Assembly: GCA_051294905.1 (NCBI GenBank)
Contig: CM119383.1
Location: 2,232,001 to 2,296,000 of the forward strand
Direction: 5' to 3'
Origin: Botryllus schlosseri
Taxonomy: Eukaryota
Length of the DNA stretch: 64,000 nt
The translations under genes and the position numbers were made by a program. Under the pieces are notes generated by a model that worked only from the letters and a program-made list of their open reading frames with translations, made no database searches and was not told the DNA's origin. The stretch's first letter is position 1. Each line of letters begins with the position of its first letter. This document shows, piece by piece, positions 20,930-62,104 of the stretch.

Positions 20930-21080
20930 TAATTTGTGGTTTTGATGCGAACTGACCTTACCGGGTCAGCCTTACCAGGACATACTCCTGTGACACGGCC
21001 CAGAAGCCAGGCATTTCGATGAAAGTTATCGTCCATGATTAGGATAATATCATTGATTTCATGTAACATTTTCATCAACC
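20930..21080 (-). mobile_element. BEL/Pao LTR-retrotransposon pol C-terminal relic (DUF5641-like)
   Basis: INDIILIMDDNFHRNAWLLGRVTGVCPGKADPVRSVRIKT matches the BEL motif GD.VL..D...PR..W.LGRV....PG.DG.VR.V.VKT; second copy at ~53590-53725. Confidence 0.8.
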
Positions 21081-21089
21081 TGTTCGAGT

Positions 21090-21200
21090 AGTGGCGAGAT
21101 GGTGCAGTGGTATAGTCCGCGGCCACAACACCAATGGGCACGGGCTCGGGTCCCACCGAGGTCGAATTCAGAATTCCTATACTAAGAGTTGGGGTTAAAT
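21090..21200 (+). mobile_element. tRNA-derived SINE head (truncated)
   Basis: A box tggtgcagtgg (21100-21110) and degenerate B box ggctcgggtcc (21143-21153); homologous to 46655-46760. Confidence 0.7.
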
Positions 21201-21956
21201 AGCCTACGCATTGTAGAATGTATAATTGCAACAGCTAGCCGGATACTAAGAAAACGCTCGCGCCTACCCGTTTCTCTTGCTTATGTTGTCATTCACAGTG
21301 CAGTGCAATGTGCATCAGTGCAATGTGCAATGTGCATATTTATTAGGTAATTTACGTGTGTGTGCGGCGGGGGGCGGGATGGGGGTCACTGCCTCACCAG
21401 ACATGAACCTCACCGCACGTCACTGCTACGATACCGCCATCAAGGTTCCGTGGCTTCAACAGTGAAAATTAGTATTGAAATTGTAATTCTCGTTGATAAA
21501 TTAAGTTTCAATGGTGAGAAGCGTATAATTTCAGTACTCAAAAAAATCGTCTTTTACCACTCGACTCGAATCATTAGAATTAATACTCGCTTCAGTTTCG
21601 AGTACTCGAATCATTGTGCCCAGCCCTACTCGTAATATGAGTAGATCAGATAGTTAGCCTAGATTTAGGAATAAAGTTGATCAAAGAACATTATTTGTAC
21701 TGTGCTGCGTTCTATAAGTTTAGGCCATCACTCGTGAAATCGCATTCCATTGATTTATATATAAATTGAAAGTCTGAAGGAGAAGTTTGCAGCCCTTCTT
21801 CGGTCGCGGCCTATTATAGGGTTTGAAATGTTCTGTGCCCCACCTCGTAGAAACTATAAGCTCTGCTCAAAACAGGGCAGTCCATCCCCAAACAATTCCT
21901 AGCTTGATTTCGGCGAATGGGATATGAGTAGAAGTGGAGAAAGGAGTTCTATTATG

Positions 21957-23262
21957 CAGGGCCGTAACAGCACTTCTGGGGGGCTTCGCCCCCCAGAGCC
22001 CCCTTGTCTGCCCGCTCTTTGGGGCTACTTGTCATCAACATTGGGTGTCCGTTTAGTGTGCCTCCCATTCTCGCCTAGACGCGCGAAGCGCGAAAAATTT
22101 CAAGAATTCATGATTCAATCGGTCAGTATCATCGAGGATTGCATACATATTGCTATAAATTTTTATCATCTATCTGCTGGCGTATTCAGATTTACCGGTA
22201 GAGCTGAGTGAGATGTATTTAAAAAGGTAGGACCCCTCAATAATGATTAAACATCTTCGGGCGTATACCCGTTGGCAGGAACGAAACAGCACTTCGTCAG
22301 GTCCCAAAAAAACTTGGGTCTTGGGCTCCAATAGGGTGATAAACTGCCCCCAGTAACCGACCGACCCCCCTCCCATTCATCTTGCTGATCGCTTTTGCCA
22401 CGAAAGCAGCCGTACTGTTCAGTGAGCCAGCGCGAAGCGCTAAAATTTTCGATAATTAATGATAAAATCGGTCAATAAGATCGGGAATTGCATATATATT
22501 GCTATCAATTTCTTGTCCTCTCTGCTCCCTTTATCAGATTTACCGGTAGAGCTGAGTGAGGTGTCTTGGAAACTGTAGGGCCCGCAAATAATAATTAAAC
22601 ATCTTCGGCGGGCGGACCCGTTGGTATGACTTCGTTACATGATGTTATTTCGTGACCTCTTGTCTGCTATTTCAAAAAATATAGAATCGGGCAAACGTAC
22701 TAAACTAAAAGACGCACACGGTTTAAAATTGGTTTTTCTTCACTGGCGTATAATTTTCCCCGCGGGATGGAATTCGTCTTCTGAGGTTCAGATTGCCAAG
22801 ACAGGAACATTCGGCGCCAGTAATTTAGGCGCCTTGGCTATGGACAATTAAAGCAATACGTAATTTGTATATATAACGAAGTTTTCAGTCAGCGTAAGGG
22901 CAGTCCTTTTCGGCCAAGGTTTTTACGCTGCCGATCGTTCTGGCACACTTCTTGGAGTCGCATGTAATAGGCTATGTCCTAAATCGTTATATGTCTTGGT
23001 GTGTCGTGTCGCGGTATTGGCCAACGCCGATATGTCCATTTCTAAAAATCTTTCGTGTTCTTGTCTTGGGGGAAGAGTACCGAAAAATCATGATATTTGG
23101 CACCTTGAAATCGCGCATAGCGCGAAAAATTTTTTAAAAGTTTCATAAATTTTCAAAAAATACTCTATAATTTATGCTAATTCACGAAATAATTTTGGGC
23201 CCCCTTCGAGCTCGCCCCCTCCCCCCAATTGGGGGTTTTGGGGTGCGGCAGTTACGGTCCTG
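21957..23262 (+). mobile_element. hAT MITE family A (CAGGGCCGTAAC TIR)
   Basis: TIRs cagggccgtaac/gttacggtcctg; absent from the paralogous position in block C (~54120); other copies at 33416-34699 and 44205-46069. Confidence 0.85.
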
Positions 23263-26065
23263 TCTGTGCATTACAGACGTTGCTAACTCGAACATTCAAT
23301 TCATTGATACAAACTATTCTTGCGACTGAAACATTTGTGTACAATGTACAATTGTACGTGTACAATGACATGTACTTATACAGTGATTTCGAATTAATGA
23401 TTTCAAGACTGGAAATTTTTAAATCGACTTGACATATTAATGCGCTGCGCTAAATTTGCGATCCGTGACGGGGGTGACGTGTATTTTCACCAGCAGTCCA
23501 TAATTGATAAAATATTGCTATTTATGTTACTATAATATGACCACAGTACCGTATACCTATACATCAAACACAGTTTAGTCTGAATTTACTGGATACCCTC
23601 TTGAACGGCACATGACATATGACGATGTCGGAATACTTGATTACTGCAGCTGTAACTCTAGCAGTCTAGCTATTATATAATCGAAATTGTTCTAGTTGCT
23701 GTTAGTCGCGAGTTGTCATCATAATTGTAGCCAGTGGGAAAAGACGCCAGAGTCAACTGTTGTTAACCGATTTGTAAATATTACTTTGAAGTTGGCGTGA
23801 ACGTTCATAGATAAATTACATCTAACCGTATCTCAGGGGTAGGCTCCGATAATTGGAGGCATACAAAGTGAGATGGTCTCAATCGAGTTAGAAAGCTAGG
23901 CCTGCTCGACGAGCCTAGATTGATGCAGCTAAAATATAACGTACTAACATTTGAACTAGGTGACGCCCAGACGTACATTTTGCAGGACTGCAATTCTGGT
24001 TGGACAAACTGCTGCAGTTGTCAGATGCAACTTCGCGAAATAAATAGAATAATTTTCCGTGGCAAAATGACTGGAGTCAATCAGGTAGGGCCTACCCATT
24101 TCGTGGTGTCGCCTAGCATTTCGTGCAACGATTGAACAAATCTAATTGATTCCCCGCCGAAGCAATTATTATACCACGCGTGGTAATGTGAAGGTCTCTG
24201 TCATCGTGAGCTCCGTTGTTTAGTTTAGTTGAATTTAACGCGCAGACCGCCCTACACGCGGATAGGTTTACCGCGAAGTTAGCGCTCTGTATATTTCAGT
24301 ATATCGTCGACTCGCATTTAAGTCACGGTTACTGTTAATAAGCTCCCGTCTTATTCGCGTTTATTGGGGTCAGGGATCGTTGCGTAGGGATATCGTATTG
24401 AGCAAGTGTTCTCCGACGATACATTGAGGGCGGAGATAATATAGTTAGCTGATCCGGAAGAATGCTAATCATGTCATTAAAAACTGCTGATCGGAACGCA
24501 TTTTAGGTGGAGATAATAAAGTTAGCTGATCCGAAAGAATGCTAATCATGTGATTAAATACTGCTAATCGCGACTCATAAAGCTGGAAAAGGTTACGCGC
24601 GATTCTTAGTGGAGACGTACCGAGTTTTCAATCAAGTGGCGTTATCTGTTGCAGCATAATGCGAAAATGCGTTATAGGCTGTCAGTTGTCAATTTGTTGA
24701 ATGAAACAGCAGTCTGCTGATAACGATACTTCTACTGCAATAGCTAGAATTATCATCGTCGCGAAATGAAAGTCGTGTCAGATTCGTACGGTACAGCTAA
24801 GTAACGTATTATAGAATATCGCTCTACAATGGCGGGAGCATAATTCGATGATTGTTTAGTGAAGCCATTAGCTAGGAGACAGTCGGCATGGTCGTTATCG
24901 GAAATATTGGTGCGTAATAGGAATGGTACGCAGTGTAAGCAGTTTTTATAGATAACTATAGTTTGTTCCGGTTTGTTGAATCCTGAGATTCACACTAAAT
25001 TCATGCGCTGCGATCAAACGGATTCTTTAATCCTGGGTTGATAAATCCTGACGATCGCGATAATCGACGTCATTGCCAATCCAACTTTATTATCTCCGCG
25101 CTGAGTTTTATTAGGCAGGTTATCTATAGCAAGACACAGCCGACAGAAGGGTCGTCGAGGACGTTCACGTTCATACATTTAGGCGGTCCGTTTTATAAAT
25201 GCTGGAACTGTCGTCGCATGCGATGCGTGGTTCCGTTAGTGTGGATCATTTTCATGCTTAAACTAACTTCATACTGCCAATTCCAACGTTAGTATATTCG
25301 CATTTCTAGTATGTCTGCGGGATTTGTCATTCTGTTTAGATGAAATGCATATATGTTCTACGTCAGAGGTGTCGAACTCAACTTGGATCGTACCTTTGTT
25401 TTTCCCTGGAATGCTTTCTGATCAAGCCTATATACATTGGAGTGTACGATGATTGGCCGAGTCAATGCAGTTAGAAACCGCTCAAGTAGCTGCTCTGACG
25501 AGGATATAAGTTGACGTATTTCCATGCTCCCTTTGTTTTAGTCGTAATGCGGGGTCTGCCCCACGAATGCGTTCTGCGCTCAGTGGAATTTAGTTCATTA
25601 TTATTAAATAGCAACTCGAGTTGTAACTTGCATACAACCAGGCCTACGATATTGTAGCCCCTGGTACAACGGTTTCGCATTGGCGTTTTCGCCTCTGTAA
25701 AAAACTGCCTGTTGGTCTGTTTTCCCAGAAATCTTTGATTTGGGTGTGCATTTTTTTGACTTCTCTGAATTTGATGTCAATGTCACCAACTTGTTCCCAG
25801 CTGTGATTAGAACGCAAACGCGGCACTGCCGTCAGATGGTTCTAATAATGTGGCCTAGAGACGTATTCGACATTTTGTGCATTGAGGAATTATTTACATT
25901 GAAAGTATTTTTCAATAAAGTCTGAACTTCTGTTTGAAACATGTTGGATAATATAAGCATTTATTTCATTTAGTCGCATGTTTGGCAGCCCTGCTGTGCG
26001 ACATTGTCACTTCAAAGTATTGCATACTAAACCCAACCGATTTCATTCAAGATTTAGTATTTTTG

Positions 26066-27153
26066 ATGAGCGGTCGGGAGATTCTTATTGGCATGCAGGT
26101 TGGCTCGAATCACCAATGCGATATTTGTGGAAAAGATGTCTCTCGAAAGGTTTACCTCAAGAGGCATTTATATACGCATTTGAGCCATGAGCGTCATGAG
26201 TGCGATATTTGTGGTAAAGAATTCTTGCACGAAACGTCCCTCAAACGTCATATGAATGTGCATATGGGCCTCAAGAACGAATGCGATATTTGCGGGAAAA
26301 ATTTCACTGACAAGAGTCGCCTTGGACGCCATAGGCGTATCCATACTCACCTGGGCCAGTTTGCATGCAAAATTTGTGGGAAAACATTTACTGACAAGAG
26401 TAATCTCAAACGCCATATGGATATCCATACTCACATGAGCCAGTTTGCATGCAAAATTTGTGGGAAAACATCTACTGGCAAGAGTAATCTCAAGCGCCAT
26501 ATGGATATCCATACTCACCCGGACCAGTTTGCGTGCAAAATTTGTGGGAAAACATTTACTGGCAAGAGTAATCTCAAGCGCCATATGGATATCCATACTC
26601 TCCCGGACCAGTTTCATATCGGCGTTAAGGATAATCAATGTGATATTTGTGGAAAAGAGTTCACTCGCGAGGTCGCTCTTGAGACTCATTTGAAAATGCA
26701 TTTAGGCATCAAGAATAGTCAATGCGATATTTGTGGGATAGAATTCAGTAACAAGGATAACCTAGATCGTCATATAAAAATTCATATCGGCATCAAGTAT
26801 AATCAATGTGATATTTGTGGGATAGAATTCAGTAACAAGGGTATCCTAAATCTTCATATAAAATTCATATCGGCATCAAGGATAATCAATGTGATATTTG
26901 TGGGAAAGAATTCACTCGCACGGGCGTCCTTGAGAATCATATGAAAATGCATTTCGGTATCAAGAATAATCAATGTGATATTTGTGGGAAAGAATTCAGT
27001 AGCAATGGTGAACTCGAGACTCATTTGAAAATGCATTTCGGCATCAAGAATAATCTATGTAATATCTGTGGGAAAGAGTTTGCTCGCAAGTCTGACCACA
27101 GGCGCCATATGCATGCCCGTTTCGGCCTAAAATATATTGGGTGTGATATATGA
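26066..27153 (+). CDS. Tandem C2H2 zinc-finger protein, paralog 1 (12 fingers; 1-nt frameshift at ~26860 within finger 9)
   Basis: Repeated CxxC-x12-H-x3-H units. ATG at 26066 follows an acceptor-like ttcaag| shared by all three copies. A4 at 26860-26863 versus A5 in the preceding finger shifts the frame; fingers 10-12 lie in the next frame, ending at 27153. Confidence 0.85.
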
Positions 27154-29100
27154 GGGAAAGCATTTCGTTAAATAAATTGCCTAAAGAATCACGACGTCCT
27201 TTCCTATTCGAAAGTACTCCCTCGAACGTCACGTGGACATTGACTTTCGAAAAAACTTAGAATTACCGCAGACTAACGCGAAGACTGAAATTGATATTCA
27301 TATTTGTGTTGAACACTGTTAGTACTGTTCATTAAAATTTGTGTTTAAAGACTATTTGTACAGTTAATGTCCAGTTTCCGTGTAAGAGATCTCGCCGAAC
27401 TTTGGCGAGATTGTCGCGTGGATGGCGACTCGATTTGCAGTACATTTCGAGGAGATTAGGATGTCAATATTCATTTCTTGTGTTTAACATCTGATTCGCC
27501 ATGTAAGTTACTTCGACTTCGTACTGTCGGGCGTATGTATGACTATATAACCTGGAAAATAACAAGATTCATTGAGCACTGAGCAGTTTATCGATCACGA
27601 TATCGTGCCGGTTTGACGCGATGATTCGTTATCTATTTCAACGCAAAGTTTCGTTTCTGTGAGAAACGCGTCAATTAACGAAGATAATGTACGTACAATC
27701 TACTTCATCGTCCATACCTTTACCCCCACTGATTGCTCTTTCAAGCGACATGTAAACTGTTCATGCCAACATGCGTCTAATGCGGGTTAGGTTATTCATT
27801 AGTGTTGTAAATTGGGGTGTCGGTAAGGTGTTAGTTACGCTGGAAATGGCGATGGTTATGACGTCAAGGTGACAGTTTTGCGGCATAAGCAGGAGACGTC
27901 ACTATCTGAGAGAATGGCCGTGTGTATCTATTTTATCGCGACATTGCGACAGATCGATGAAGTTTTGTCTTGGCGTAGGACAGAAAAATTGCCCATATGT
28001 CCAAGGATGCGATGATGTAGAATGCTGAAACAAGCCTCTCCGACACCTTCGACTAACTTGACCTGGTAGAACTTGGGTCTGTAGTTGTACAAGATGGTGT
28101 ACAATTTTACATGTTTCTGGTGTCCTCAAAATCAGTATGACGTATTTCATGCTAACGTAGGAATACAAAGAATCAAGGTAACGGTCGATCTTGTGTACTG
28201 AACAGACGGACAGGCAGACAGACAGATTCAGTGTTGTGCTAAGTGCCGATAATAATATTTGCCTTTAGTCAGCAAAAACCAACCGTATATGTAAAATCCG
28301 CATTAGTTCTTATAGCTTATTGTTCATGACACAGACATCGCGTGAGAACATCGAGGACATACCATCGTCGCAACGTTAAGCCCACCTTGATGCCGTAGAA
28401 AAGCAGTACCGTAATTGCAGAAGCCTCGTAAAATCAATCTTCGATATTTCAACTCGACTCATTGTTGATCGAAATAAAGGCTTGTTAAATTCAATCTTTA
28501 AACACACTTAGTAAATGATCATATTGATTGTAATAATATCAAGGTGAATCTGTCGAGCCAGAAACAAAGAAATTCGCTTGTCGAAATGCCGACTCGTCAA
28601 TAAATTCTGTGTCGTTGGAGGCTTGACCAGGGACCTAAAAATAGGGATTTAGGTTGATTTGGATTTCATATGAAGCTTCTCTCACCCACAAATGCACGAG
28701 TGCTTCAGTCAAATTTCTATAAAATCATGAGACTCGCCGCGACATTTTGATTTCTTGCAGTCTTCCCGGAATACAATTTCAGACTCGTGCTCCCTCTGCC
28801 AAAAAGTGTTGAGCATCCAATTGCAACAAAATCATAGGTGCACTGCTCATTCTTAAATATTCAACACATGCGCACCAAATTTATTCAGGCACCAGATATA
28901 ATCGTATCTGTTGGCTGCAGACTACACCTGGTGGGTATACTCAATTCAAAACAAACATGTAAAACAAGGCCTCTGTTTAAAACAAGTATTTTTTTCAAGC
29001 CATAACGTCGCGAATATTCAATTGTGAAGTCGTATAGTGGATTGACATTGACAATTGAAAATCTAGGACCAAAATAGCTCCTTTGACGAAATATTTACGT

Positions 29101-31087: not shown

Positions 31088-32610
31088 CAGTGGTTCTCAA
31101 CCTTTTTCACCTCGCGGACCGGTAAAATTTCAAAAGATATTTGATGGACCAGTGAACCTTAAAAAATTGAAATCAATCCCAAATGTAATGTATCCAGTCG
31201 TTTTTCTGCAAGTATGGTTCTAGAGCAGGGTTGGCCAACCTTTTTGCTATTCACGGCCGCATTTCGAATACCTATACGACCTACGGCCGCAGTCCAGGAC
31301 ATAGTCGCAAGGAACTAACTGGACACCACACCCATGTTGAGCTATGCATGTTCAAGTCCATGTCCATTGTCCATTTCTGGTGAACTCCGGACTAATCTAT
31401 CTTTTCATATCGTCTTACTATTAGTCATCGAAATCGCTACATAGTGGTAATGTTATGAATAACAAATGGCAGCGGTTATGGTCGCGCCATGCACGAAACT
31501 TTTTTCAGATTTACGAATGAATTTCGTCATTAATATTTATAGTTCCACATATTACTATGAAATATTAATCCTTTCTCAACCAAAGTGATCAGATTCGTCG
31601 GTAGAGTTGATGGAGGGGTAGTGTTTTCGAAAATTTAGAGCAAATGGATGCATCTTCGGGTGGACCAATTGTTAGTATGGTCACTTTGGGAAGTGTTGTT
31701 ATTTCTTGACTTCCCATCAGGATTGTCGGTATAGTGGAGAGACAGTGGAATCTCCTAAATGTACCAGAAGAAGATTTCTTTCGTGAGGAGCGCACGATTC
31801 CAGAGTGTCATTTCTATATGGGGTGCATCATGTTCCTCCGCTGTTCCAATCTGTACTGTGGGGCTCAGATTGCACGGGCGCTACGACTACATTAAAATCG
31901 AAAAATGAAGTCGCATTGAATCGCGCATAGCGCGGAGAAAATTTCATGATTAAATAAAATATCTCAAAAGTTCGGGAGACAATTCGTAAATTCAATTTTC
32001 ATGTCTACGGCCGCCGATACATGCTAATTTAATTACGTGTCCACGGCCGCGCAAATTTTCTTCTACGGTAACAGGTTGGCCACCCCTGTACTAGAGAGTG
32101 AAATTGTGAGGGTTTTGTTCCTAATTAAATGTATTTATGATGGTATTCATTTGATTTTACGGTAGTGTCTGCTGAGTGCTGAGTAGAGGTAAACTTGACT
32201 TGCCCAGATTAACATGGCTAATTTCGAGCCGACGACCGTGCATTAACCGACCGGGCAAAGTGGAATAATATTCTATCTTGCTCATTTCCCACTACTACCA
32301 GACGTAGCCTACTACCCGTACAAAAACGCCTGATTACAGCGATACCTATGGCCACCCACAAAATTAAGGAATCCAGAACGAATGATCGTACGAATTGCGC
32401 GGTTTAGCGAGTCAGCTCACGGGCCTAATGTTACCTCGCGAATATCTGTATCGGTTTAAAATTTCACGTTTTATTTATTTTACCAATGGACAAGCCTTCA
32501 ACATCTTGCATCTTGAAATGAAGGTATAAAATCTAAATATACCTCGCGGACCGGCAGAAAAGTCGTCACGGACCGGCACCGGTCCGCGGACCGGCGGTTG
32601 AGAACCACTG
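31088..32610. mobile_element. Charlie/Buster MITE (CAGTGGTTCTCAACC TIR)
   Basis: TIRs with perfect TSD gtctagtt; inserted into an inverted family E copy that ends at ~32709. Confidence 0.9.
31226..32088. mobile_element. Buster MITE family E (CAGGG(T/G)TGGCCAACC TIR), nested
   Basis: TIRs with TSD ttctagag/tactagag; homolog at 49561-51156. Confidence 0.88.
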
Positions 32611-34878: not shown

Positions 34879-37002
34879 CAGGGCTGTGGAGTCGGAGTCG
34901 GAGTCGGTGGAGTCTGAGTCGGAGCTTGGCTAATTTTCGCTTGATGGAGTCGGAGTCGGAGTCGTGAAAACTGTAGAGGCCGGAGTCGGAGTCGTGAAAA
35001 CTGTAGTGGCCGTAGTCGGAGTCGTTGAAAAAATACTGACTGGAGTCGGAGTCGGAGTTTGTTAAAATGACCCTGACTTCGACTCCGACTCCGACTCCAA
35101 CTTCTTTATCCAGTAAACAATTTCTTTTCAAAGATACCTTTTAAATTACTAATAATACCTGTAATAGGATTTTTAAGTACTATCAATCACTGTTAGTAAC
35201 GATACAGATCATGGGGGCCAGACCGTGCCCCGCAGGCCAAATGTGGCCAGCGAGGTTTTGTGTGGCCTGCGAGGTAATTCTCGAAATTAGATATAACATC
35301 AGGTAAAATTGCACGGCCAACCAAAATTTGATTAGCCTGACCGCGAAATTTGATGATGACTAAAACATCAGTTTCGACCCATTGGCGTAACCAGGGGCCA
35401 GCCACCTTCAGCGCAGATCTTCGTATATGACCATAAAGTAGAATATTCCATAGCAGATTTATTTGACTTGAAATTTTTCTTAAACCTTCGCATGATTTAT
35501 TATCAGGTTTTTTGCATTTAGTATTGGAAACCCTAGAAATTACAAATACGCGCAATTTGCAGAATTGAGTCCAACTATATTCATTAGGAGAACGTGTCGT
35601 CCAACACGGGACTTCGCTTGTAGGTTCGAAGCGAGATCGTCGGCGATGAAACATTTGCGCAAAATGACAGAGCCATGCTCACCGAAACCGTCGATATTGC
35701 TATATCTAAAACGCTAAATAATCCTGTCCTAGCCAAATGAGCCCATGGCTATACAGAGGCGACCCCCAATATGTGCAAGTAATATATTTATCGATCGAAT
35801 TCATTCAGTACCTTTGAAATAATTTCGTGGTTCGCGCGACCAGGGCATGACCGCATACTGTACAGTTGCACACTGAGTTTTCAATACATAATTGTTATCA
35901 ATTTTAGAACATAGTCATATAAGTCTTGTTTTCAATGTTACCGAATTCGGTTCGTTCCTATCGGGCGACTAAAAACAGGTTATCAACATTCAAGTTTCCC
36001 GCGCACTGGTCCGTAAATCTCATGCGACCTTTTGGCCGAAAAGGTTGGCCACTCCTGAAATAGTTAGAATTGAACATTATTTGCAAAATACAATTCAGTT
36101 GTATAGAGGAAGATAGAAGCAATATGCATCTTCGCGATGCAGTCACAAATTGATGCAATTTTTGGAATTATACCATGATATTGGGACAGCGCAAATATAT
36201 CGTCTGGTTGTAAAATTGATGTAAATATAACCAAACGCTCCTTCCCACTTGACAAAATTAAAAATATTTGTGGTGTAGCTTAGCTGCTTGGGTCGGACAA
36301 ATGATTAAGAAAGACTGCAAGTCCTAGTCCTTGACTAAGTACATGACTGAGTACTTGACTAAGAGAATGTAGACTAGACATATGCTATTTGACTACTTCT
36401 TAAATTTCGTTAATGACCAATGTCAATTAGTATTGTGAGAGTGTGTGTGCTTTTACTCATTGCAGTCTGTAATGAGAAAATTAGTAAGATGCATCTCTGT
36501 ATTAGTTGCTGACTGATGCACAAGAGCAACACTTCGATTGTTTTATCTACATTTTAATTATACAGGATGGGATATATGTCGTGTTCGAATGATTCATACA
36601 TATTAGGTTATTAGAGAGTCCATGTTATGAAAACTGATAAAATATGAAAAAATGAAGGTAATTTAGAAAGGCAATCTTTCATCCATAGTGAATAATTAGT
36701 GCTGTGCCACAATGAAACAATTTTGCATGCCATCGTTTGTTTGTATTTGTTTAATGGTTATATGATAGCCATTTAACCGTAACTGTGGCATATAATTTTC
36801 GAAGTAAATTAGTAATACTGTTGGATTCGGGGTTGGAGTCGGAGTCGGAGTCGGCGTCGGTATTTTAAAGACTCGGGAGTCGGAGCCGAAGTCGGAGTCG
36901 GTACGTTTAAAGACTCAGGAGTTGGAGTCGGTCCATTGAAAATGTGTGGAGTCGTAGTCGGAATTGAAGTCGGTGCTAAAATTTACCGACTCCAAAGCCC
37001 CG
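34879..37002. mobile_element. hAT element with GGAGTC subterminal arrays, carrying a nested Charlie-type MITE (~35210-36057)
   Basis: cagggctgtggagtc...gactccaaagccccg; TSD gtcgcgag/gtcgtgag; empty site seen in block A (~23705) and block C (~54547). Confidence 0.9.
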
Positions 37003-47133: not shown

Positions 47134-47268
47134 GTAGACGTGCGCGGCCAACAATGTTAGTTCGGTTTTCTTTCATATTTATTCGTGTCATGTTGCTTAT
47201 TTTGTGACTTGAGTCCTAGTCCAAGTAATTGTGTTCATTGTTCAGTTTTGAGTTCAACCCGGTTTAAT

Positions 47269-51156: not shown

Positions 51157-51928
51157 TTGTAGTACATCAACGAAAGCTACTTTCCTACATTCTCGAGTAG
51201 AAAGTGTCTGTCCTTACTCAGTTCAACAGCAGAAGTTGTTGACTGACAAAATTGAAGTTGTGCGTACACTGCTGGTGACGCAGCGTGTTGTTTCATTCTG
51301 ACAATGTTGTCAGAATCACAATTTTTTTATCGTGCTCTTCTTGATATAAGAACCAATGCCCACGCAGTCTTGCTTCAGTTAGGACATTTCGGTACGTTCA
51401 ACATAACACCATGTCAACCTATTTGTCTCATTTGGCTGTTTATGATTCACAATGAGCCGTAGAATGTCGAATGATAAGTTCACCGACAGTGCAAATATTT
51501 ACGATACAAACGAAATGTAGGTGGCAAAAAAAATTTGACTTTGTATACCATCGATTACATTCATGAATTAATCACCCCATGTCTGGTTGAGAATAATCAC
51601 TGCTGTATTTGCAGAAACTTGGATATTAAATTGGATATTGAAGAAACGCTACATAAATCAAGTTCACTTCGTATCTAATCAGAGTTGATTGTCATAAGCG
51701 TGAGAATGGCAAATGTATGTACTGTACAGCAAGTTTGACCCGTTTCGCACTGTACTGTTCTACTGTAGCATTTTCCGAAAATCCAGAACTGATTAGAGTT
51801 GAAATTGGAGCATAGAAAATTAGATTACCTGCATTTGATTCTAGTTATTAATAGACAACTGGAATTATGTAGTTTTCCACGTCTGCACTTTGCAAAACAT
51901 CGCATCGTGTCAATTACATTCATTGTAG

Positions 51929-52480
51929 TACTGGAATCGACAGAGGTCGCTGGCCAAAAGGAATGGAGCTTTTTCAGCGACATGAAGCACGCCCGCAGTC
52001 TACCCTCAGTGGCGGCAGCCTGCGGGAAAATGTACGCGCTTGGCGGATTTCGAAAATGGAATATGGAGCGTCTGGTTCAATTCACAGTTCCGTATCCATA
52101 GAGGAACTAGGGCTGCAGCCATCAATGGCTTTTTGTACGTAATGACGGGTGTGTGTATAATGTACATTGTACAACTATGGATCTTCAACGTAGCGAGCGA
52201 GAGGCTCAGGCAAAGCGAGGCAGAACCGATCATAGGAACTAATTACTACATTGTAGCAGTCGACGGACTTCTCTACGCGATGAGCTCTACCTTAAAAACG
52301 ACCAGCATTGTATTATGATTTCGCGTTACAGCCCTAAAGCTGATGCCTGGTCTGTGTGGTCGGAAAATGTAACTTCAAAGCGGCCTTCTGCCTCGAGTCT
52401 CGCTCCGATGGACCGCGTGTCGAAGCAGGTGTGCATGGAGAAGCAATCTTTACTTGTCTCTTTGACGTAACGCAGTAGTA
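51929..52480 (+). pseudogene. Decayed kelch-repeat coding region
   Basis: EWSFFSDMKHARSLPSVAAACGKMYALGG; then in another frame DFENGIW...AAAINGFLYVMTG...VAVDGLLYAM; then in a third frame SRYSPKADAW. At least two frame breaks. Confidence 0.75.
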
Positions 52481-55400
52481 ATACACTGTCATTTGTAGGC
52501 TTGATACAAAGCAGGAAAGTTGCATTATTATTATTAATATTAAAATTGATATTGCGAAAGTGTGTGTTAACTAAGGCTGAGCGAATTCGAGTACCTTTGT
52601 GATTCGATTCTGAATAGAGAATTTGGCGTAGAGCAAGGGGTGTCAAAAACATACCGCCCGCGTGTCACATCCGGCAGATGTCTGTACACCAGGCTTAGCC
52701 CGTTTCGCACTATACAGTTCTCCTGAGTATTTTCAGGAGAACCAGAAGTTGGATTCGCTCTCATTAGACAACTCGAATTATCTAATCGCTCAATTCTGAG
52801 TATAGAAGCTGCTGCTATGTGTTCACGTGAACGCCAGTGAGAATTGTTCCAAGCAAAACGAGAATGGATGCTCGCACGCGCCAGCGATACACGTATGATA
52901 TTTGTTAAATCACTTGTTATCACAAGCATAATCGTCCTGTTTTCCGTAAAGATACAAAACTTTATGTACTTTAATCCAGACACTAGATCTGTTTATTACC
53001 AATTTCGTCATTTCAAAACAACACAAGATTGCGATACAATGAAAAGATAGGAAGGTCTCGAAACGACTTGGTCTAGTCCAGTGGTTCTCAACCGGGGGTC
53101 CGCGGACCCCTAGGGGATCGCGAAACCTCTAAATTTGCAAAATAATATATTTTGTATTTTTTTTAATTAGGGAAATCACGGGCAGTTTCGCTTCATAACT
53201 GCTAAAACCTCGGGACTCACATCAACAGCACGGCGGTCTGAGCTGAAACATCGCACTATGCAAACTCATTTTTATTGCCAAATTCCCAATAGCGTACTGA
53301 TTAGGGCTGGGCAAAATCGAGTACATAAGTAATTCGATTCTGACTCACGTATTTTGCTTCGAGTCGAGTATTCGAGTATACCTCATTATCACGTCACAAC
53401 AGAATGTACTGTCAAAGTTCAAATATGTACATTGTACATTTTATGTCACCACATAGAATATAATGCCTTTTTTCCGCCGCCGCCGCCTTGCTATAAGTCG
53501 GCAGTTACGGATAGAAATGAAGAATATCGGTCTGGTGTAAATTACAGTAGTCGACAAACACCACGAATACCACAAAACAAAAATATAAACTGACCTTGCC
53601 GGGTCAGCTTTACCAGGTCATACTCCTGTGACAGGGCCCAGAAGACACGCATTTCGGGGAAGGTCATCGTCCATGACCAGGATAATATCATTGATTTTAG
53701 GTATCATTTTCCATCAACCTATTTGAGCCGTTTTTAGAGCCTTTACAAAGGGTTCAAGATCACAAGGAACAGCAAATACTGTTGTGATTGGACGGTTGTT
53801 CACAATTTACTCACACTCACTCATCGGGCTTGCTTACTAGGCAAGTCATCTGAGAACACTCGACTATTGCAAATTGCCCGTAAAGTCATTGCTTCTAGGC
53901 CTTACAGCTCAACTGGAGATGATCCCCAAGTGGCTCAAAGTCTAAAGGAGTTTGCAGCGTTCCTTCGGCCATGGCTTATTTTCGAGTTTGAAATGTTATG
54001 TGACCCACCTCGTAGAAAATAAGCTCTGCTCAAAACAGAGCAGTCCATCCCCAAACAATTCCTAGCGTGATTTCGGTGAATGGGATATGGGGGGAAATGG
54101 AGAAAGGGGTTTTCTTATTGAATCTGTGCATTACAGACGTTGCTAACCCGGGACATTCAATTCATTGATACAAACAATTCTTGCGACTCCTACATTTGTG
54201 AACAATGTACAATAACATGTACTTATACAGTGATTTCGAATTAATGATTTCAAGACTAGAAATTTTTAAATCGACTCGACATATTAATGCACTACGCTAA
54301 ATTTGCGATCCGTGGCGGTGGTGACGTGTATTTTCACCGGCAGTCCATAATTGATGAAATATTGCTATTTTATGTTACTATAATATGACCACAGTGCCGT
54401 ATACCTATACATCAAACACACTTTAGTCTGAATTTACTGGATACCCTATTGAACGGCACATGACATATGACGCTGTCGGAATACTTGATTACTGCAGCTG
54501 TAACTCTAGCTATTCTATAATCGAAATTGTTTTATAGTTGCTGTTAGTCGCGAGTTGTCATCATAAGTGTAGCCAGTGGGAAAAAACGCCAGAGTCAACT
54601 GTTGTTAACCGATTTGTAAACGTTACTTTGAAGTTGACGTGAACGTTTTTAGATAAGTTACATCTGACCGTATCTCAGGGGTAGGCTCCGATAATTGGAG
54701 GCATACAAAGTGAGGTAGTGGTCTCAATCGTGTTAGCAAGCTAGGCCTACTCGACGAGCCTCTAGTCTAGATTGATGCAGCCAAAATATAACGTACTATC
54801 ATTTAAACTAGGCGACGCCCATACGTACATTTTGTAGGACAGCAATTCTGGTTGGACAAACTGCTGCAGTTGTCAGATACAACTTACCGAAATAAATATA
54901 ATTATCTTCCGTGGCAAAATGCCTGGATTCAATCACGTATGGCCTACCCATTCAGTGGTGTCTCCTAGCACTTCGTGCAACAATGGAACAACTCTAATTG
55001 ATTCCCCGCCGAAGCAATTATTATATCACGCGTTGTAATGTGAGGTCTCGCTCATCCTGAGCTCCGTGGTTTAGTTGAGTTTAACGCGCCTACCGCCGTA
55101 CAAGTGGACAGGTTACCGCGAAGTTAGCGCTCTGTATATTTCAGTAGATCGTCGACTTGCATTAAAGTCACGGTTACTGTTAGTAAGCTCCCGTCTTATT
55201 CGCGCTCAACGGGGATCAGGGATCGTTGCGTAGGGATATCGTATTGGGCAAGTGTCCTCTGACAAGACATTGAGGGCGGAGATAATAAAGTTAGCTGATC
55301 CGGAAGAATGCTAATCATGTGATTAAAAACTGCTAATCTGGGCGCATTTTAGGTGGAGATAACGAAGTTAATAGCTGATCAGAAAGAATGCTAATCGTGT

Positions 55401-57478
55401 GATTAAATACTGCTAATCGCGACTCATAATGCTGGAAGAGGTTACGCGCGATTCTTAGTGGAGATGTACCGAGTTTTAAATCAAGTGGCGTTATCTGTTG
55501 CATCATAATGCGAAAACGCGTTATAGGCGGTCAGTTGTCAATTTGTTGAATGAAACAGCAGCCTGCTGATAACGATACTTCCACCGCAATAGCTAGAATT
55601 ATCGTCGCCAAATGAAAGTCGTGTCAAATTCGTACGGTACAGCTAAGCAACGTATTATAGAATATTGTTATCGCTCTACAGTGACGGGTGCATAATTTGA
55701 TGATTGCTTAGTGAAACCATTACCAAGGAGGCAGTCGGCATGGTCATTATCGGAAATATTGGTGCGTAATAGGAATGGTACGCAGTGTAAACAGATTCTA
55801 TAGATAACTATAGTTTGTTCCGGTTTGTTAACTCCTGAGATTATCACTAACTTTAGGCGCTGCGATCAAACGGATTCCTTAATCCTGGGTTGATAAATCC
55901 TGACGAACGCGATAATCGACGTTATTGCTAATCCTGATCTGAGTTTTATTACGTAGGTTATCTATAGCTAGACACAGCGGGCAGAAGGGTCGTCGAGGAC
56001 GTTCACGTTCATACATTTAGGCGGTCCGTTTTATAAATGCTGGAACCGTCGTCGCATGCGATGCGTGGTTTCATTAGTGTGGATCATTACTAGGGCTGGG
56101 CAAAATCGAGTACCTGAGTGATTCGATTCTGAATCACGTAATATGCTTCGAGTCGAGTCGAGTAATCGAGTATCACTCATTATGACGTCATAACAGAATG
56201 TAATACGCCAAAGTTCAAATATGTACCGTTTATGCCACCACAACGAATATAATGCCTGTTATCCTTCTCGTAAATGATACTTTGGTATTTTTCTACCATA
56301 CCGATTTCATTCCACTCGGTGACAATGTTGTGGGATAATCATGAGTTCGAAAATGTGCTACGTCCAGTAACCTGACGTCCAGTAAACAGATTCTATAGAT
56401 AACTATAGTTTGTTCCGGTTTGTTAACTCCTGAGATTATCACTAACTTTAAGCGCTGCGATCAAACGGATTCCTTAATCCTGGGTTGATAAATCCTGACG
56501 AACGCGATAATCGACGTTATTGCTAATCCTGATCTGAGTTTTATTAGGTAGGTTATCTATAGCTAGACACAGCGGGCAGAAGGGTCGTCGAGGACGTTCA
56601 CGTTCATACATTTAGGCGGTCCGTTTTATAAATGCCGGAACCGTCGTCGCATGCGATGCGTGGTTCCATTAGTGTGGATCATTACTTAACTGCGCATTTT
56701 CATGCTTAAAATAACTTCATACTGCCAATAGCATATCCGCAGTTCTAGCATGTCTGCGGGAGGTGTCGAAGTCAACTTGGATCGTACCTTTGTTTTTTTC
56801 TGAAATGCTTTCTTATCAAGCCTATATACATTGTAGCATACGATGATTGGCCGAGTCAATACAGTTAGAAACCGCTAAAGTAGTTGCTCTAACGAGGATA
56901 TAAGTTGAAATATTTCCATGCTCCCTTCGTCTTAGTCGGAATGCGGGGTCGGCCCCATGTATGCTTCATGAGGAGTACTAAATGTTTAATTTAAATGTGG
57001 AATTTGGTTCATTATTATTAAATAGCAATTCGAGTTGTAACTTGCATACAACCGGGTCTACGATATTGTGGGCCCTGGTACAACGGTTTAGCATTGGCGT
57101 TTTCGCCTCTGTAAAGAACTGCCTCTTGGTCTGTTTTCCCAGAAAACTTTGATTTGAGTGTGCATTTTTTGACTTTTATGAATTTGATGTCAATGTCACC
57201 AACTTGTTTCCAGGGGTGATTAGAACGCAATCGCGACACTGCCGTGAGATGGTTCTAATAACGTGGCCTAGAAACGTATTTGACATTTTGTGCATTGAGG
57301 AATTATTTACATTGAAAGTATTCCTTAATGAAGTCTAAACTTCTGTTTGAAACATGCTGGATAATATAAGCATTTATTTCATTTATTCGGATGTTTGGCA
57401 GCCCTGCTGTGCAACATTGTCACTTCAAAGCATTGCATACTAAACCCAACCGATTTCTTTCAAGATTTAGTATTTTTG

Positions 57479-58516
57479 ATGAACGATCAGGAGAATCTTA
57501 TTGGCATGCACGCTTGCACGAATCACCAATGCGATATTTGTGGAAAAGATTTCTCTCGAAAGGTTTACCTCAAGAGGCATTTGGATACGCATTTGGGCCA
57601 CGAGCGTCATGAGTGCGACATTTGTGGGAAAGAATACTTGCACAAAATATCCCTCAAACGTCATATGAATGTGCATATGGGCCTCCAGAACGAATGCGAT
57701 ATTTGCGGGAAGAATTTCACTGACAAGAGGCTCCTCGCAGGCCATAGGCATATCCATACTCACCCGAACCAGTTTGCATGCAAAATTTGTGGGAAAAAAT
57801 TCACTGGCAAGAGCAATCTTAAACGCCATCTGGATATCCATACTTTTCCGAACCAGTTTGCATGCGAAATTTGTGGGAAAAAATTCACTGGCAAGAGTAA
57901 TCTTAAACGCCATCTGGATATCCATACTTATCCGAACCAGTTTGCATGCAGAATTTGTGGGAAAGAATTCACTCGCAAGGGCTTCCTTAACACACACATG
58001 AAAATTCATCTCGGCATCAAGAATATTCAATGTCATATCTGTGGAAAAGAGCTGACTCACCAGTACAATCTCAAGACTCATTTGAAAATGCATTTCGGCA
58101 TCAAGGATTATCAATGCGATATTTGTGGAAAAGAATTCACTCTTAAGGGTAACCTAAATCGTCATATAAAAAATCATATTGGCATCAAGGATATTCAATG
58201 TGAAGTTTGTGGGAAAGAGGTCACTCGCCAGGTCGAGCTCGAGACTCATTTGAAAATGCATTTCGGCATCAAGGATAATCAATGTGATATTTGTGGAAAA
58301 GAATTCACTTACAAGGGTGACCTAACTTGTCATATAAAAAGGCATTTCGGTATCAAGGATAATCAATGTGATATTTGTGGAAAAGAATTCACTTGCAAGG
58401 GTGACCTATCTTCTCATATAAAAATGCATTTCGGTTTCAAGGATAATCTATGTGATATCTGTGGGAAAAAGTTCGCTCGCAAGTCTGACCATAAGCGCCA
58501 CATCCATACCCATTAA
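57479..58516 (+). CDS. Tandem C2H2 zinc-finger protein, paralog 3 (12 fingers, intact)
   Basis: Uninterrupted ORF with 12 C2H2 units; the last 7 fingers are nearly identical to fingers 11-17 of paralog 2. Confidence 0.92.
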   Translation: MNDQENLIGMHACTNHQCDICGKDFSRKVYLKRHLDTHLGHERHECDICGKEYLHKISLKRHMNVHMGLQNECDICGKNFTDKRLLAGHRHIHTHPNQFACKICGKKFTGKSNLKRHLDIHTFPNQFACEICGKKFTGKSNLKRHLDIHTYPNQFACRICGKEFTRKGFLNTHMKIHLGIKNIQCHICGKELTHQYNLKTHLKMHFGIKDYQCDICGKEFTLKGNLNRHIKNHIGIKDIQCEVCGKEVTRQVELETHLKMHFGIKDNQCDICGKEFTYKGDLTCHIKRHFGIKDNQCDICGKEFTCKGDLSSHIKMHFGFKDNLCDICGKKFARKSDHKRHIHTH

Positions 58517-59998
58517 GGTCTAAAATATGTTGAGTGTGATATATGACAGAAGGCATTTCGTCAAATAAATTACCTAAACAATCACGACGTCATTTCCTGT
58601 TCGAAAGTACTCCCTCGAACGTCACGTGGACATTGCCTGTCAAAAAAATTAGAATTACGGTTCCGCAGACTAACGCGAAGGCTGAAACTGATACTCATAT
58701 TCGTGTGGAGCACTGTTCATTCAAATTTGTGTTTAAAGACTATTCGTACAGTTAATGTCTAGTTTCTGTGCAAGAGATCTCGCCGAACTTCGATTATCGT
58801 ATGGATGGCCACACGATGTGCAGTAGATTTCAATGAGATTGGGATGTCAATATTCATTTCTTGTATTTAACATCTGATTCGCAATGTACTGTATATTACC
58901 TAGACCCAAATTTTTGTCTTCGTACTGTCGGGCGTGATACTATATAACCTGGAAAATAACGAGATTCATTCAGCAATGTATCGGTCACCATATCGAGCCG
59001 GTTTAGCGCGATGATTAGTTATCTATTTCAACGTAAAGTCATCCTTGTGAACACATGTACTATAGCTATTGTATGGGCGACAAATCAGACAGTATCATCT
59101 TTCTTCCCAGTTTCGTTTGTGTGAGTAAGGCGCCAATGAACGATGATAATGTACATATGGTCTACTTCGTCGTCCATACCTTTACCTCCACTGATTTTCC
59201 ACCTTTCAAACGAGATGTAAGCTGTTCAGTGTTCAGAACTTCATACCAACAGGCGTCTGATTCGGGTTAGGTTAATCACTAGTGTTGTAAACTGGGGTGT
59301 TACGCTGGAAACAGCGGTGGCTATGAGGTCAAGGTGACACACCTTCGACTAATTTGGCTTGATAGAACGTAGATCTATACTATACCTTTACAATATGATG
59401 TACATATTTCTAACATCGTCAAAATCAGTATGTTGTATTTCATGCCAACGTAGGAATACAATAAATCAAGGTAGCGTTCGAACTCGTGTACTGAACAGAA
59501 GGAGGGCAGTCAGGGACAGATTTATTCAGTGTTGAGTGCCGACAAAATTATTTGCCTTTAGTCAGTAAAAACCAACCTTATTTGTAAATCCGCATTAGTT
59601 CGTATAGCTCATTGTTCCCGACAAAGACATCGCGAGGATATACCATCGTCGCAACGTTAAACGCACCTTAATGCCGTAGAAAAGCAGTACCGTAATTGCA
59701 GAAGCTTCGTAAAATCAGTGTTCGACATTTCAACCCGACTCATTTTTGTTCGAAATATAGGATTGTTGAATTCGATCTTTAAGCACACGTAGTGAATGAT
59801 CATGATGATTATAATAACAACAACAAGGTGAGTCCGTTGAGCCAGAAACAAAGCAATTCGATTGCCGACTCGTCGATAAATTCTGTGTCGTTGTAGGCTT
59901 GAGCAGGGACCAAAAAATAATGATTCAAATTGATTTGGATTTCATATGAAGCTTCTCTCACCCACGAATGCACGAGTACTACAGTGATCACTGATCAG

Positions 59999-61272
59999 CA
60001 GGCCTGTTTATTTTTGGATATTTGATTTTATTTTTGGAGATTCTCCAAAAATAAGATTTGAAAACATCCAAAAATAAGCTTTTTTTGGATGATGTTTTTT
60101 CAAGTTTTTTAGTGAAATGCGCGAGTCAGAGCAGTGTAAATACTGTTGAAACAACCAGGAAACTCACAAACACACACAAAAACAGCATGTGTGTCCGGAA
60201 GAGTTCTCCGAAACGCTGAAAGTACTTCCACTCACTGGAAGGATCAGAGGCGACACGACTAGGGTTAAAGAGGCGGCAGGGTATGAAATCTTGCGAGTGT
60301 GGTGCGGGCGGGACCTTGTAACGCAGGCCGAATATCGCCACCTGTACAACAACAACTTCGTCCACACGATGATGGGCCTGAATGGCTACCTCCAACGGCA
60401 ACAGGACTTGATCCAGGAAAAGAAAAGTATGTGCCCCAAGTTTGTAGACACATGTTGGTTGTCAATTAAGAAGATTACCACTTGATTGACTATAGACAGT
60501 TAGACACCGTACCAAACTCCTCGGGGTTATAAACGATAAAAGTCCGGCCTGTGCACGTCCGCTGCAGTAGCGGATCCTACTAATCGTCCTCGAGCGCATG
60601 GCCACAGAGGTGAGCACCACCGTCACAAAGATTCAGGGACTTGGCCATCTGATCGTGGAGCATCATGATGAGCTCCATCGCCTGGTCGAACGCCTTCGAG
60701 CTCGGTGCCCAGCTGAGGACTGGGACAATGACATCCGCGGCAAGGAAGGTCCTCTGGTCAGAGGGTGCTGGGCTATCAAGTTCACTGAGTCACGCAATTT
60801 CGTGGAGGATCAGAGTGTGCACTGTGCAGTCCTCGACCTTATCGAGAATATCGGCGAAAAAGAGAAGCAGTCCACGTTCAAGGCAGCCAGGAGCCTTATA
60901 GCAGGGCTCATCGACGGCATAGAGAAAATTGAAGTTGCCGACAATGAAAGGGCTGATTTCTCGAAAATCAATTGTGAGAAAGGTCTCTTCCTGGCGTCAC
61001 CCACTGATATTTATTTGGAATGCATTCTCCAGGCCAAAGACTTTGTGACGAAAGTATTAAAAAGTTAGATCAAGATCACTGATGATGTCGATGTGTTGAA
61101 GAATATGAATACATGATAATAACATATATTCGTTGAAGTTTTTTATGTAGTATTAGGGCTAAAAACACCTTCATTTCTTATTTTTGGAGATTCTCCAAAA
61201 ATAAAATTTGAAAACATCCAAAACTAAGCTATTTTTGTTATTTTTGGAGAAATCCAAAAATAAACAGGCCTG
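59999..61272 (+). mobile_element. Recent non-autonomous hAT-type element carrying internal ORFs
   Basis: 21-bp perfect TIR caggcctgtttatttttggat, perfect TSD ctgatcag, TTTGGA subterminal repeats; empty site in block B at ~42306-42313. Confidence 0.93.
60598..61068 (+). CDS. 156-aa ORF inside the hAT-type element; probably an internally deleted transposase fragment
   Basis: Open ATG-to-stop frame in GC-richer DNA; HCAVLDLI and GLFLASPT..Y.ECILQAK weakly recall the hAT C-x2-H and PTRW regions. Confidence 0.4.
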   Translation: MATEVSTTVTKIQGLGHLIVEHHDELHRLVERLRARCPAEDWDNDIRGKEGPLVRGCWAIKFTESRNFVEDQSVHCAVLDLIENIGEKEKQSTFKAARSLIAGLIDGIEKIEVADNERADFSKINCEKGLFLASPTDIYLECILQAKDFVTKVLKS

Positions 61273-62104
61273 CTGATCAGTCACATTTCGATAAATCATG
61301 AGACTCACCGCGACATTTCGATTTCTTGCAGTCTTCGCGGAATACAATTCCAGGACTCGTGCTCCCTTTTACAAAAAATGTTGAGCATAGAATTCCAACA
61401 AAATCATAGGTGCAGTGCTTATTCTTGAATATTGAACGCATGAGTACCAAATTTATTCATGCACGAGATATAATTGGATCTGTTGGCTGCAGACTACACT
61501 TGGTGGGCATACCCTACTCACTCTGTGTCTGTGATGGACGCGTAGGAGTAGGGTGTAAAGCCTGCATGTACCTTGCAGGCACACGCCATCTGCTTCAAAA
61601 ACTGATGACTAGGGCAAGTTTTTGTTGCACTTGTCGCGAGAAAGTTGCATTTATAATTCTTGTTTAATTATTAGGGTATGAGATACTCGAAAGGTTCCGT
61701 TGTATAACCTAACTCCTGCAGAGCTGTCAAATTTGTTCGCACGGTTTGGCGAAACCGCCAAAAATTACATTTTTTACCGGCACATAGCGAGAAAATTACG
61801 CAATGCGGTAATAATTCTCCCCAAAAAGCCAACCAGCATAGCTACAACACCCTCCTTCTAAAACAAGTCAAATACCTCACCCCAAATCCCGTAGGTCTAC
61901 AAACTTGACCCACGGCGTTGCAGAGAAACTTACACTTTGCGACTTTACCAAAATCTATAGCCTGAATAAGGTGTGCTAGCGAAAATATAATTTTCGGCGG
62001 TCCCGCCTTGGCGTTCGTAAAATGGGAAACTACCTCAAATTTAAACGACAGCATCAATAAAGCGATCTATTTACATATTGTTCGAACACACCCGTTCTTG
62101 GCGG

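Follow-up and report, generated by a model that had tools for sequence, protein, structure and literature searches.

The window, a stretch of 64,000 nucleotides, carries A, B and C, three of five C2H2 poly-zinc-finger genes that are arranged in tandem on contig C13 and encode fingers only. This is likely to be a young cluster evolving by birth and death, with B, C and E most likely encoding DNA-binding proteins. An earlier note on this DNA had described a trio, which holds for the window but not for the cluster, as copies D and E lie 8 kb and 35 kb past the window end. The five copies are all local, in tandem and on the same strand; three are intact (B, C and E, the last with 16 fingers) and two are broken (A, and D by a nonsense mutation). 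Elsewhere in the genome, a genome search placed only one diverged copy (C8, 69% identity).

Table 1. Features located in the window, with the evidence or properties of each
Feature	Position	Strand	Evidence or properties
Duplicated block A	21769-28942	+	self-BLAST colinearity with blocks C and B
Zinc-finger gene A	26066-27153	+	ORF list and three-frame translations; 12 fingers if frameshift read through
hAT-like element, 1523 bp	31088-32610	.	target-site duplication GTCTAGTT
Duplicated block B	37154-42553	+	self-BLAST
High-copy dispersed repeat	38953-39262	.	directly 5' of the B zinc-finger ORF; common to 5/5 copies
Zinc-finger gene B	39354-40814	+	486 aa from conserved ATG, 17 fingers, intact
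AATAAA	40862-40867	+	48 nt past gene B stop, inside vestigial decayed finger
hAT-like element, 864 bp	44290-45153	.	target-site duplication CTGATAAC
Kelch-repeat pseudogene, first Kelch exon remnant	46980-47192	+	tblastn
Kelch-repeat pseudogene, last exon, broken over three frames	51856-52452	+	weak Pfam Kelch matches; tblastn
Duplicated block C	53937-61519	+	self-BLAST
Zinc-finger gene C	57479-58516	+	345 aa, 12 fingers, intact, chimeric
hAT-like non-autonomous element	59999-61272	.	25-nt inverted end from CAGGCC; target-site duplication CTGATCAG

Duplicated blocks and the Kelch-repeat neighbour

The ORF list and self-BLAST confirmed the earlier reading of three colinear blocks, each with a single-exon C2H2 array, at 80-95% identity, although the shared blocks span 5.4-7.6 kb by self-BLAST rather than the 8-9 kb first given. 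Block A aligned with block C over 23263-25250 against 54123-56088 (89.7% identity) and over 25366-27649 against 56760-59039 (84.6% identity), both by self-BLAST. Later changes include a repeat inserted in block A (~21972-23262), a local 595-bp tandem duplication in block C (55787-56091 / 56382-56686) and a hAT-like insertion, also in block C. The dispersed repeat directly upstream of the finger ORFs returned ~1199 first-look candidates in the genome, with scored matches 70-82% identical.

A Kelch-repeat pseudogene, absent from the earlier note, sits between B and C. Its first exon remnant has 90% amino acid identity (tblastn) to a copy at L062 4267-4533, which lies between D and E and looks intact, and its last exon matches a 227-aa open exon of L062 (tblastn); the comparison covered part of the D-to-E interval and part of the BTB/BACK region of this Kelch gene. 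The Kelch exons end in their own stop and are part of a gene separate from the zinc-finger array. Judging from sequence, the Kelch-repeat gene was co-duplicated with the zinc-finger gene and the window copy is a pseudogene. Only two copies of the Kelch exon were found in the genome, both local (one dead and one between D and E), and for this reason a recurrent two-component pairing of Kelch and zinc-finger genes was rejected for this locus.

The layout of the copies also bears on the idea that each block is one copy of a large transposon bearing a zinc-finger gene, which is extremely improbable. Terminal inverted repeats were sought at the block ends and none were found, for which the idea was rejected; the local, tandem, same-strand arrangement, the duplication of a host Kelch gene alongside and the single diverged copy elsewhere also argue against it.

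Anatomy of the zinc-finger genes

The zinc-finger ORFs occupy 25982-26944 (A), 39270-40814 (B) and 57395-58516 (C) on the forward strand and encode fingers of the C-x2-C-x12-H-x3-H type at 28-residue spacing (PF00096, E = 1e-55 to 1e-95). A Pfam scan of the three ORFs matched C2H2-type families only, with no other domain, which bears out the reported absence of KRAB, ZAD, SCAN, BTB and SET. The leader of about 17 residues noted before finger 1 was likewise recovered, counting from the conserved ATG of B (39354) and C (57479) to the first Cys. In this leader, as in those of other zinc-finger ORFs of the genome, the sequence is similar to the last part of a decayed finger, and the reading frame is open for ~28 codons upstream of the ATG. 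The ATG is preserved, together with a CTAAAC...TTCAAG/ATTTAG motif, in 5/5 copies. Downstream, AATAAA lies equally far past the stop in each of the intact genes (B, C and E) and presumably acts as their poly(A) signal.

Array structure differs among the copies. The finger counts of 12, 17 and 12 put forward earlier stand for B and C, while A has 12 only when a 1-base frameshift is disregarded: as assembled, a 1-base deletion beside the A-run 26860-26863, either genuine or a homopolymer error of the assembly, puts the array out of frame, and an in-frame loss has removed most of one finger at the junction of fingers 6 and 7. In B, fingers 4-6 were duplicated again as 7-9 in a 252-bp unit (39585-40281), and fingers 4-10 form a run of near-identical xSNR helices. 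Gene C is a chimera, with fingers 1-6 sharing 99-100% DNA identity with fingers 1-6 of E and fingers 7-12 being 93-100% identical to fingers 12-17 of B.

The non-TGEKP linkers described earlier were recovered, the arrays carrying THxNQFA and (F/L/I)GIK(D/N)xQ types with TGEKP absent. The H-to-C linker keeps the canonical length of 7 and retains from TGEKP either T1 only or G2 and K4. The GIK(D/N) linker is the local version of AG(V/I)KNH, the genome-wide type; the xG(V/I)K(N/D) type was confirmed on 25 other zinc-finger ORFs of the genome, and among 412 linkers of other such ORFs none was TGEKP. Poly-zinc-finger ORF candidates in the genome number well over a thousand. The private middle module with THxNQFA linkers was found nowhere else in the genome, and the genome-wide count of NQFA linkers that the earlier note had called for returned not a large family but nine exact NQFACKIC junctions, all within the five genes of this one cluster.

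Selection and expression

Divergence among the copies separates the framework of the fingers from their DNA-contact positions. Pairwise omega was 0.28-0.65 at non-contact (framework) codons and 0.3-2.4 at DNA-contact codons (1.1-1.2 in most pairs), values that come from small counts and pairs that are not independent. B and C differ by fewer non-synonymous changes over amino acids 1-128 (Fisher p = 0.004). Entropy at helix positions -1, 2, 3 and 6 was 2.8, 2.4, 2.9 and 1.8 bits, highest at -1, 2 and 3, compared with 0-0.8 bits at the Cys and His ligands and at the core Phe and Leu. With framework omega at ~0.3-0.6 and contact omega at ~1 or more, B, C and E are probably real genes.

Array turnover is visible in periodicities of 84, 168 and 252 bp, B carrying the 252-bp unit and E one of 168 bp. 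The proposal of rapidly evolving arrays therefore stands, in that contact residues are the most variable and lengths differ via finger duplication and recombination. So does that of a lineage-restricted subfamily: searches of 5.8 billion proteins with full-length and N-terminal module queries returned none above 47% identity, the best being generic ZNFs. The ORFs and their near relatives were also absent from a 15-billion-protein collection.

When samples of 1.0-1.9 Gb from each of three bulk RNA-seq runs were mapped to block B, depth on gene B was ~0. The earlier note had named lack of expression as a point that would refute it, and the near-zero reads on B in three runs are in line with that point, in a sample too thin to refute. 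Run X1, whose kind is uncertain, covered the B ORF and flanks evenly at 5-15x in a manner resembling genomic DNA, and mapping of reads to block B revealed no splice joints or loose ends at the candidate acceptor of B.

The low depth on B, the absence of the ORFs from all protein collections, the breakage of A, D and the Kelch copy and the similar identity of coding and flanking DNA would all suit a reading in which every copy is an unexpressed relic, a recently dead duplicate whose ORF has not yet decayed. This is rather unlikely, given the framework constraint and the Fisher result, the three arrays of 345-486 codons that remain open despite a dS of ~0.25 between the B lineage and the C/E lineage, and the invariance of the Cys and His ligands in 45/45 fingers of B, C and E. 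The effective time for which the ORFs needed to stay open is reduced by gene conversion. The RNA depth on B, the lack of a protein-collection entry and the two broken copies of five also count against the birth-and-death explanation.

Upstream sequence

In KRAB, ZAD and FiNZ genes, the finger exon usually lies downstream of one or more effector exons. A comparable arrangement, in which the finger ORF would close a larger gene and one or more exons further 5' would supply an effector domain that has escaped notice, would agree with this usual layout, with the frame that is open 5' of the ATG, and with the branch-point-like CTAAAC and AG dinucleotides that precede the ATG in all copies. Against it, forward-strand ORFs of at least 50 aa in the shared 2-4 kb upstream had no Pfam match, a search that small exons could escape, and a dispersed repeat occupies the DNA directly upstream. 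A tblastx comparison of the upstream 1.5 kb of 27 zinc-finger loci matched recent duplicates only, in all frames and thus at the level of DNA, and no upstream protein-level conservation was found against 25 other zinc-finger loci. A sliding-identity profile of the five copies had no outstanding stretch. An effector domain encoded upstream is accordingly improbable.

Probable birth and death of the cluster

Under the preferred explanation of a birth-and-death cluster, a segmental duplication would have copied a zinc-finger gene with its adjoining Kelch-repeat gene, after which in-register unequal recombination of 84-bp finger units would have changed array length. Recombination between paralogs would have produced chimeras, such as C with its E-type 5' half and B-type 3' half, and copies would have died by frameshift (A), by nonsense mutation (D) or, as with the Kelch copy in the window, as pseudogenes. 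The products of B, C and E would most likely be sequence-specific DNA-binding proteins composed of the 17-residue leader and three finger modules, probably ordinary fast-evolving regulators. Each mRNA would contain one coding exon, with a candidate splice or trans-splice acceptor 9-15 nt 5' of the ATG and the predicted poly(A) signal 48 nt past the stop. A search with the Ciona spliced-leader pattern returned a single match, which had a mismatch and was at chance level.

If expressed, the cluster would be a compact natural example of zinc-finger arrays gaining new specificities, in which five adjoining copies directly display the duplication of modules as well as the recombination of paralogs. 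It would also add one more non-vertebrate lineage for asking whether finger-only proteins police repeats.

hAT-like elements and possible repeat recognition

hAT transposons are recognised by an 8-bp target-site duplication, short inverted ends with a YAG start and a transposase with a C-terminal dimerisation domain. Requiring YAG-type inverted ends of at least 13 nt and an exact 8-bp target-site duplication, six hAT-like elements were identified in the window, three of them inside 20930-61610, compared with 0 in ten shuffles. The minimum of ten transposon families stated earlier was not reproduced, although self-BLAST of the window recovered further dispersed repeats. From their sequence, the elements look non-autonomous. 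The one in block C entered after the block duplication (self-BLAST) and contains a 156-aa ORF (60598-61068) with weak likeness to a hAT transposase C-terminus; this ORF had no Pfam match, and its Atlas feature matches to FAM200/hAT C-terminal clusters (0.83-0.90) offer no more than a weak lead. The 864-bp element has related copies in flanking loci as well as at other places in the window.

A role in surveillance, in which the fast-changing arrays would recognise and silence hAT or other repeats in the manner of KRAB-ZFPs or zebrafish FiNZ-ZNFs but with no fused effector, has a published metazoan-wide precedent in Wells 2023 (PMC10547256). It would be consistent with the rapid array turnover, with contact residues evolving at a neutral rate or faster over a constrained framework, and with recent hAT-like activity in and around the blocks, including the post-duplication insertion in block C. 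The near-identical xSNR helices of B would also suit a periodic or repeated target. Contact-variable, framework-constrained fingers are, however, known also from ZNFs with targets other than transposons, hAT-like surroundings are expected anywhere in a repeat-rich genome, and no finding here ties the proteins to transposons. The linkers occur in five genes only, far below a repertoire on their own, B had no reads in three RNA-seq runs, and no effector or adaptor was found, the Kelch neighbour being a two-copy, local gene with one copy dead. Such surveillance is considered fairly unlikely. It is more doubtful that the finger-only ZNFs, including the NQFA subfamily, form an effector-free surveillance repertoire for transposons and repeats, acting by steric block or through a separate adaptor; if they did, new specificities would arise mainly via finger-module shuffling between adjoining paralogs, as in the chimeric C.

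Comparison with known zinc-finger systems

The cluster resembles tetrapod KRAB zinc-finger clusters in its tandem arrangement, single finger exon, growth by 84-bp units, recombination between paralogs and many pseudogenes, and in its variable contact residues within a constrained framework. It differs from them in its non-TGEKP linkers and in that KRAB (PF01352) was not found in the ORFs or in upstream forward-strand ORFs of at least 50 aa. In KRAB-ZFPs, transposon binding and embryonic expression are established, and silencing of transposons is TRIM28-dependent. The cluster is likewise distinguished from ZAD-ZNF, SCAN-ZNF, BTB-ZF and PRDM genes, as no ZAD, SCAN, BTB or PR/SET match was obtained in the ORFs or in those upstream ORFs.

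That lineage-specific non-KRAB ZNF expansions of metazoans track transposons is an idea already in print since Wells 2023 (PMC10547256). The same paper describes the zebrafish FiNZ-ZNFs as ~700 genes with a conserved N-terminal domain, expressed at zygotic genome activation, the knock-down of which leads to transposon derepression (PMC10547256). The present cluster is similar in being a lineage-specific non-KRAB poly-ZNF expansion outside tetrapods, and differs in having five genes, 17 residues before finger 1 and no N-terminal domain found. The cluster is of the ordinary kind for such genes and adds little beyond the published metazoan ZNFs.

Five tandem copies on contig C13

The three C2H2 zinc-finger (ZF) genes of the window (C13, 2,232,001-2,296,000, in the 495.5-Mb assembly G000) lie in blocks that self-BLAST and a repeat finder show to be colinear at 80-95% identity. 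The blocks measure 5.4-7.6 kb, less than the 8-9 kb of the earlier note. Genome searches carried the cluster past the window end to two further copies, D, interrupted by an in-frame stop (HI*IH) and decayed in its tail, and E, which is intact with 16 fingers; outside the C13 cluster one copy, 69% identical, was found on C8. That the blocks are a transposon was rejected, as block B shows no terminal inverted repeats at its ends and all five C13 copies share one strand; A-E are therefore tandem segmental duplicates. The upstream part of block C holds a local tandem duplication (55787-56091/56382-56686, 98.7% identical, 595-bp offset), absent from blocks A and B. A dispersed repeat of ~310 bp (window 38953-39262) lies immediately 5' of every cluster ZF ORF, and a genome search for it gave ~1199 first-look candidates, with scored matches 70-82% identical.

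Remnants of a Kelch-repeat gene, which includes a BACK-like exon, sit between B and C, and a copy that looks intact, its last exon open over 227 codons, lies between D and E. This is a local gene co-duplicated with the ZF genes, whose window copy has since died and become a fragmentary pseudogene. A functional Kelch/ZF pair at this locus has no support, the last exon having only two copies genome-wide (B-C and D-E intervals), one of them dead. A cytochrome P450 exon lies at the left window edge, outside the range of the earlier note (1711-2175, minus strand; PF00067, E = 3e-5), and some 10-20 kb before the window start the interval C13:2212001-2222000 holds sulfotransferase exons on its minus strand (5593-5943 and 6894-7256 of that interval; PF00685, E = 4e-11).

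Features of the cluster (window positions unless stated; L062 is C13:2316001-2326000; the earlier note covered 20930-61610)
Feature	Position	Strand	Source or remark
ZF ORF A	25982-26944	+	ORF list
ZF ORF B	39270-40814	+	ORF list
ZF ORF C	57395-58516	+	ORF list
Block A	21769-28942		self-BLAST/repeat finder
Block B	37154-42553		self-BLAST/repeat finder
Block C	53937-61519		self-BLAST/repeat finder
Copy D	C13:2,304,168-2,304,890		genome search
Copy E	C13:2,331,497-2,332,934		genome search
Kelch exon remnant	46980-47192		90% protein identity to exon between D and E
Kelch last exon remnant	51856-52452		split across three frames
Kelch copy, D-E interval	L062 1978-2307, 4267-4533, 6002-6424, 8889-9569		
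hAT-like element	10882-11315		outside earlier range
hAT-like element	12568-13847		outside earlier range
hAT-like element	31088-32610		inside earlier range
hAT-like element	44290-45153		inside earlier range
hAT-like element in block C	59999-61272		inside earlier range
hAT-like element	62622-63991		outside earlier range

Finger-only ORFs and their linkers

The ORFs match only C2H2-type Pfam families (PF00096, E = 1e-55 to 1e-95). No non-finger domain was found in them or in plus-strand ORFs of at least 50 aa in the shared 2-4 kb 5'; upstream regions of other ZF loci showed no protein-level conservation. All copies share a start ATG (B 39354, C 57479) with the first Cys 17 residues on, and this leader resembles the final part of a decayed finger (…I-x-M-Q/H-A-G…), as also seen in other ZF ORFs of the genome. 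Conserved in all copies is CTAAAC…TTCAAG/ATTTAG, 9-15 nt 5' of the ATG; AATAAA, 48 nt 3' of the stop codon, is also conserved, and the Ciona spliced-leader pattern is absent. If the animal trans-splices a leader, the simplest gene model would be a single-exon trans-spliced mRNA. Three bulk RNA-seq runs (1.0-1.9 Gb, 6-13% of each) gave essentially zero depth over gene B, with signal in 36800-42600 confined to edge repeats, a thin negative given this sampling and the unspecified source tissues.

Genes B and C have 17 and 12 regular fingers, as first counted, and the 12 given for A hold only with read-through of a frameshift: eight intact fingers precede a ninth broken by an apparent 1-base deletion adjoining the A-run 26860-26863, beyond which the next frame encodes another three. 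Gene A has, in addition, lost sequence in frame between fingers 6 and 7, and 3' of the stop codon every copy retains the vestige of a finger that is already disabled. Other long ORFs in the arrays (39393-40220 minus, 39544-40290 plus, 57467-58114 minus) were rejected as genes, being products of the periodic, stop-poor 84-bp repeat.

Both reported linker types, THxNQFA and GIK(D/N), are present. Across 25 other poly-ZF ORFs in the assembly, none of the 412 linkers is TGEKP and the consensus is AG(V/I)KNH(K/E), so GIK(D/N) is the cluster's own variant of a genome-wide pattern that retains G2 and K4 of TGEKP. THxNQFA linkers belong to this cluster alone: all nine genome occurrences of the degenerate pattern NQFACKIC fall there, as do nine of ten for GIK(D/N)NQCDIC; the NQFA-linker subfamily numbers five genes. 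Poly-ZF candidates number at least 1460 at first look (45-50% identity) and concentrate on contig C1, the best-scoring other matches lying mostly in a few megabase-scale regions (about 4-6, 10, 18-19, 32-37 and 41 Mb). These exact proteins are absent from public protein collections. Protein searches found no relative above 47% identity to full-length queries, and the N-terminal module gave 26 candidates sharing words, the best 42% identical; orthologs elsewhere were thus undetectable, and the cluster has no gene annotation.

Array turnover and selection

Gene C is a chimera with an E-type front and a B-type rear. Finger by finger, its fingers 1-6 match those of E at 99-100% DNA identity and its fingers 7-12 match B fingers 12-17 at 93-100%, and the flanks agree (5' with E, 98-99.7%; 3' with B, 95-99%). 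Tandem Repeats Finder gave array periods of 84, 168 and 252 bp, and helix signatures showed B fingers 7-9 to repeat fingers 4-6 and a two-finger unit present three times in E. Together, the periods, the chimera and its concordant flanks indicate that arrays change mainly by recombination or gene conversion among neighbouring paralogs and by in-register slippage of finger units.

By Nei-Gojobori on colinear stretches, omega (dN/dS) was 0.29-0.75 overall, 0.28-0.65 at non-contact codons and 0.3-2.4 at helix codons -1, 2, 3 and 6 (most pairs 1.1-1.2), estimates that carry small counts, non-independent pairs and ages blurred by gene conversion. Between B and C (aa 1-128), non-contact codons held 13 synonymous changes in ~60 sites against 23 non-synonymous in ~276 (Fisher p = 0.004), and non-synonymous change was higher in contact codons than in the rest (p = 0.048). 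This pattern, with Cys and His ligands invariant in every one of the 45 fingers that B, C and E have together, finger-position entropy maximal at helix -1, 2 and 3, and three arrays still open at dS ~0.25, favours real, constrained genes whose specificity would change freely.

Transposable elements and comparison with known clusters

Six hAT-like elements in the window combine YAG-type inverted ends of at least 13 nt with an exact 8-bp target-site duplication; 10 shuffles produced none. Recent hAT-type activity is therefore real, but the ten or more recently active DNA-transposon families of the earlier note were not reproduced under these strict criteria. The element in block C breaks colinearity with block B and thus inserted after the B/C duplication; its 156-aa ORF weakly resembles the hAT transposase C-terminus, as a lead only. 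No link was found between the hAT-like elements and the ZF proteins, for which TE recognition is a speculative possibility. A proposal already in print (PMC10547256) has ZNF expansions of metazoans tracking TEs, and the present finding is real but ordinary. The C13 cluster resembles KRAB-ZFP, ZAD and FiNZ clusters in its mode of evolution, but no KRAB or ZAD domain was detected in its ORFs or in the upstream ORFs searched, and only 17 residues precede finger 1, where FiNZ genes have an N-terminal domain; it is best classed as a finger-only tandem C2H2 cluster restricted to its lineage.
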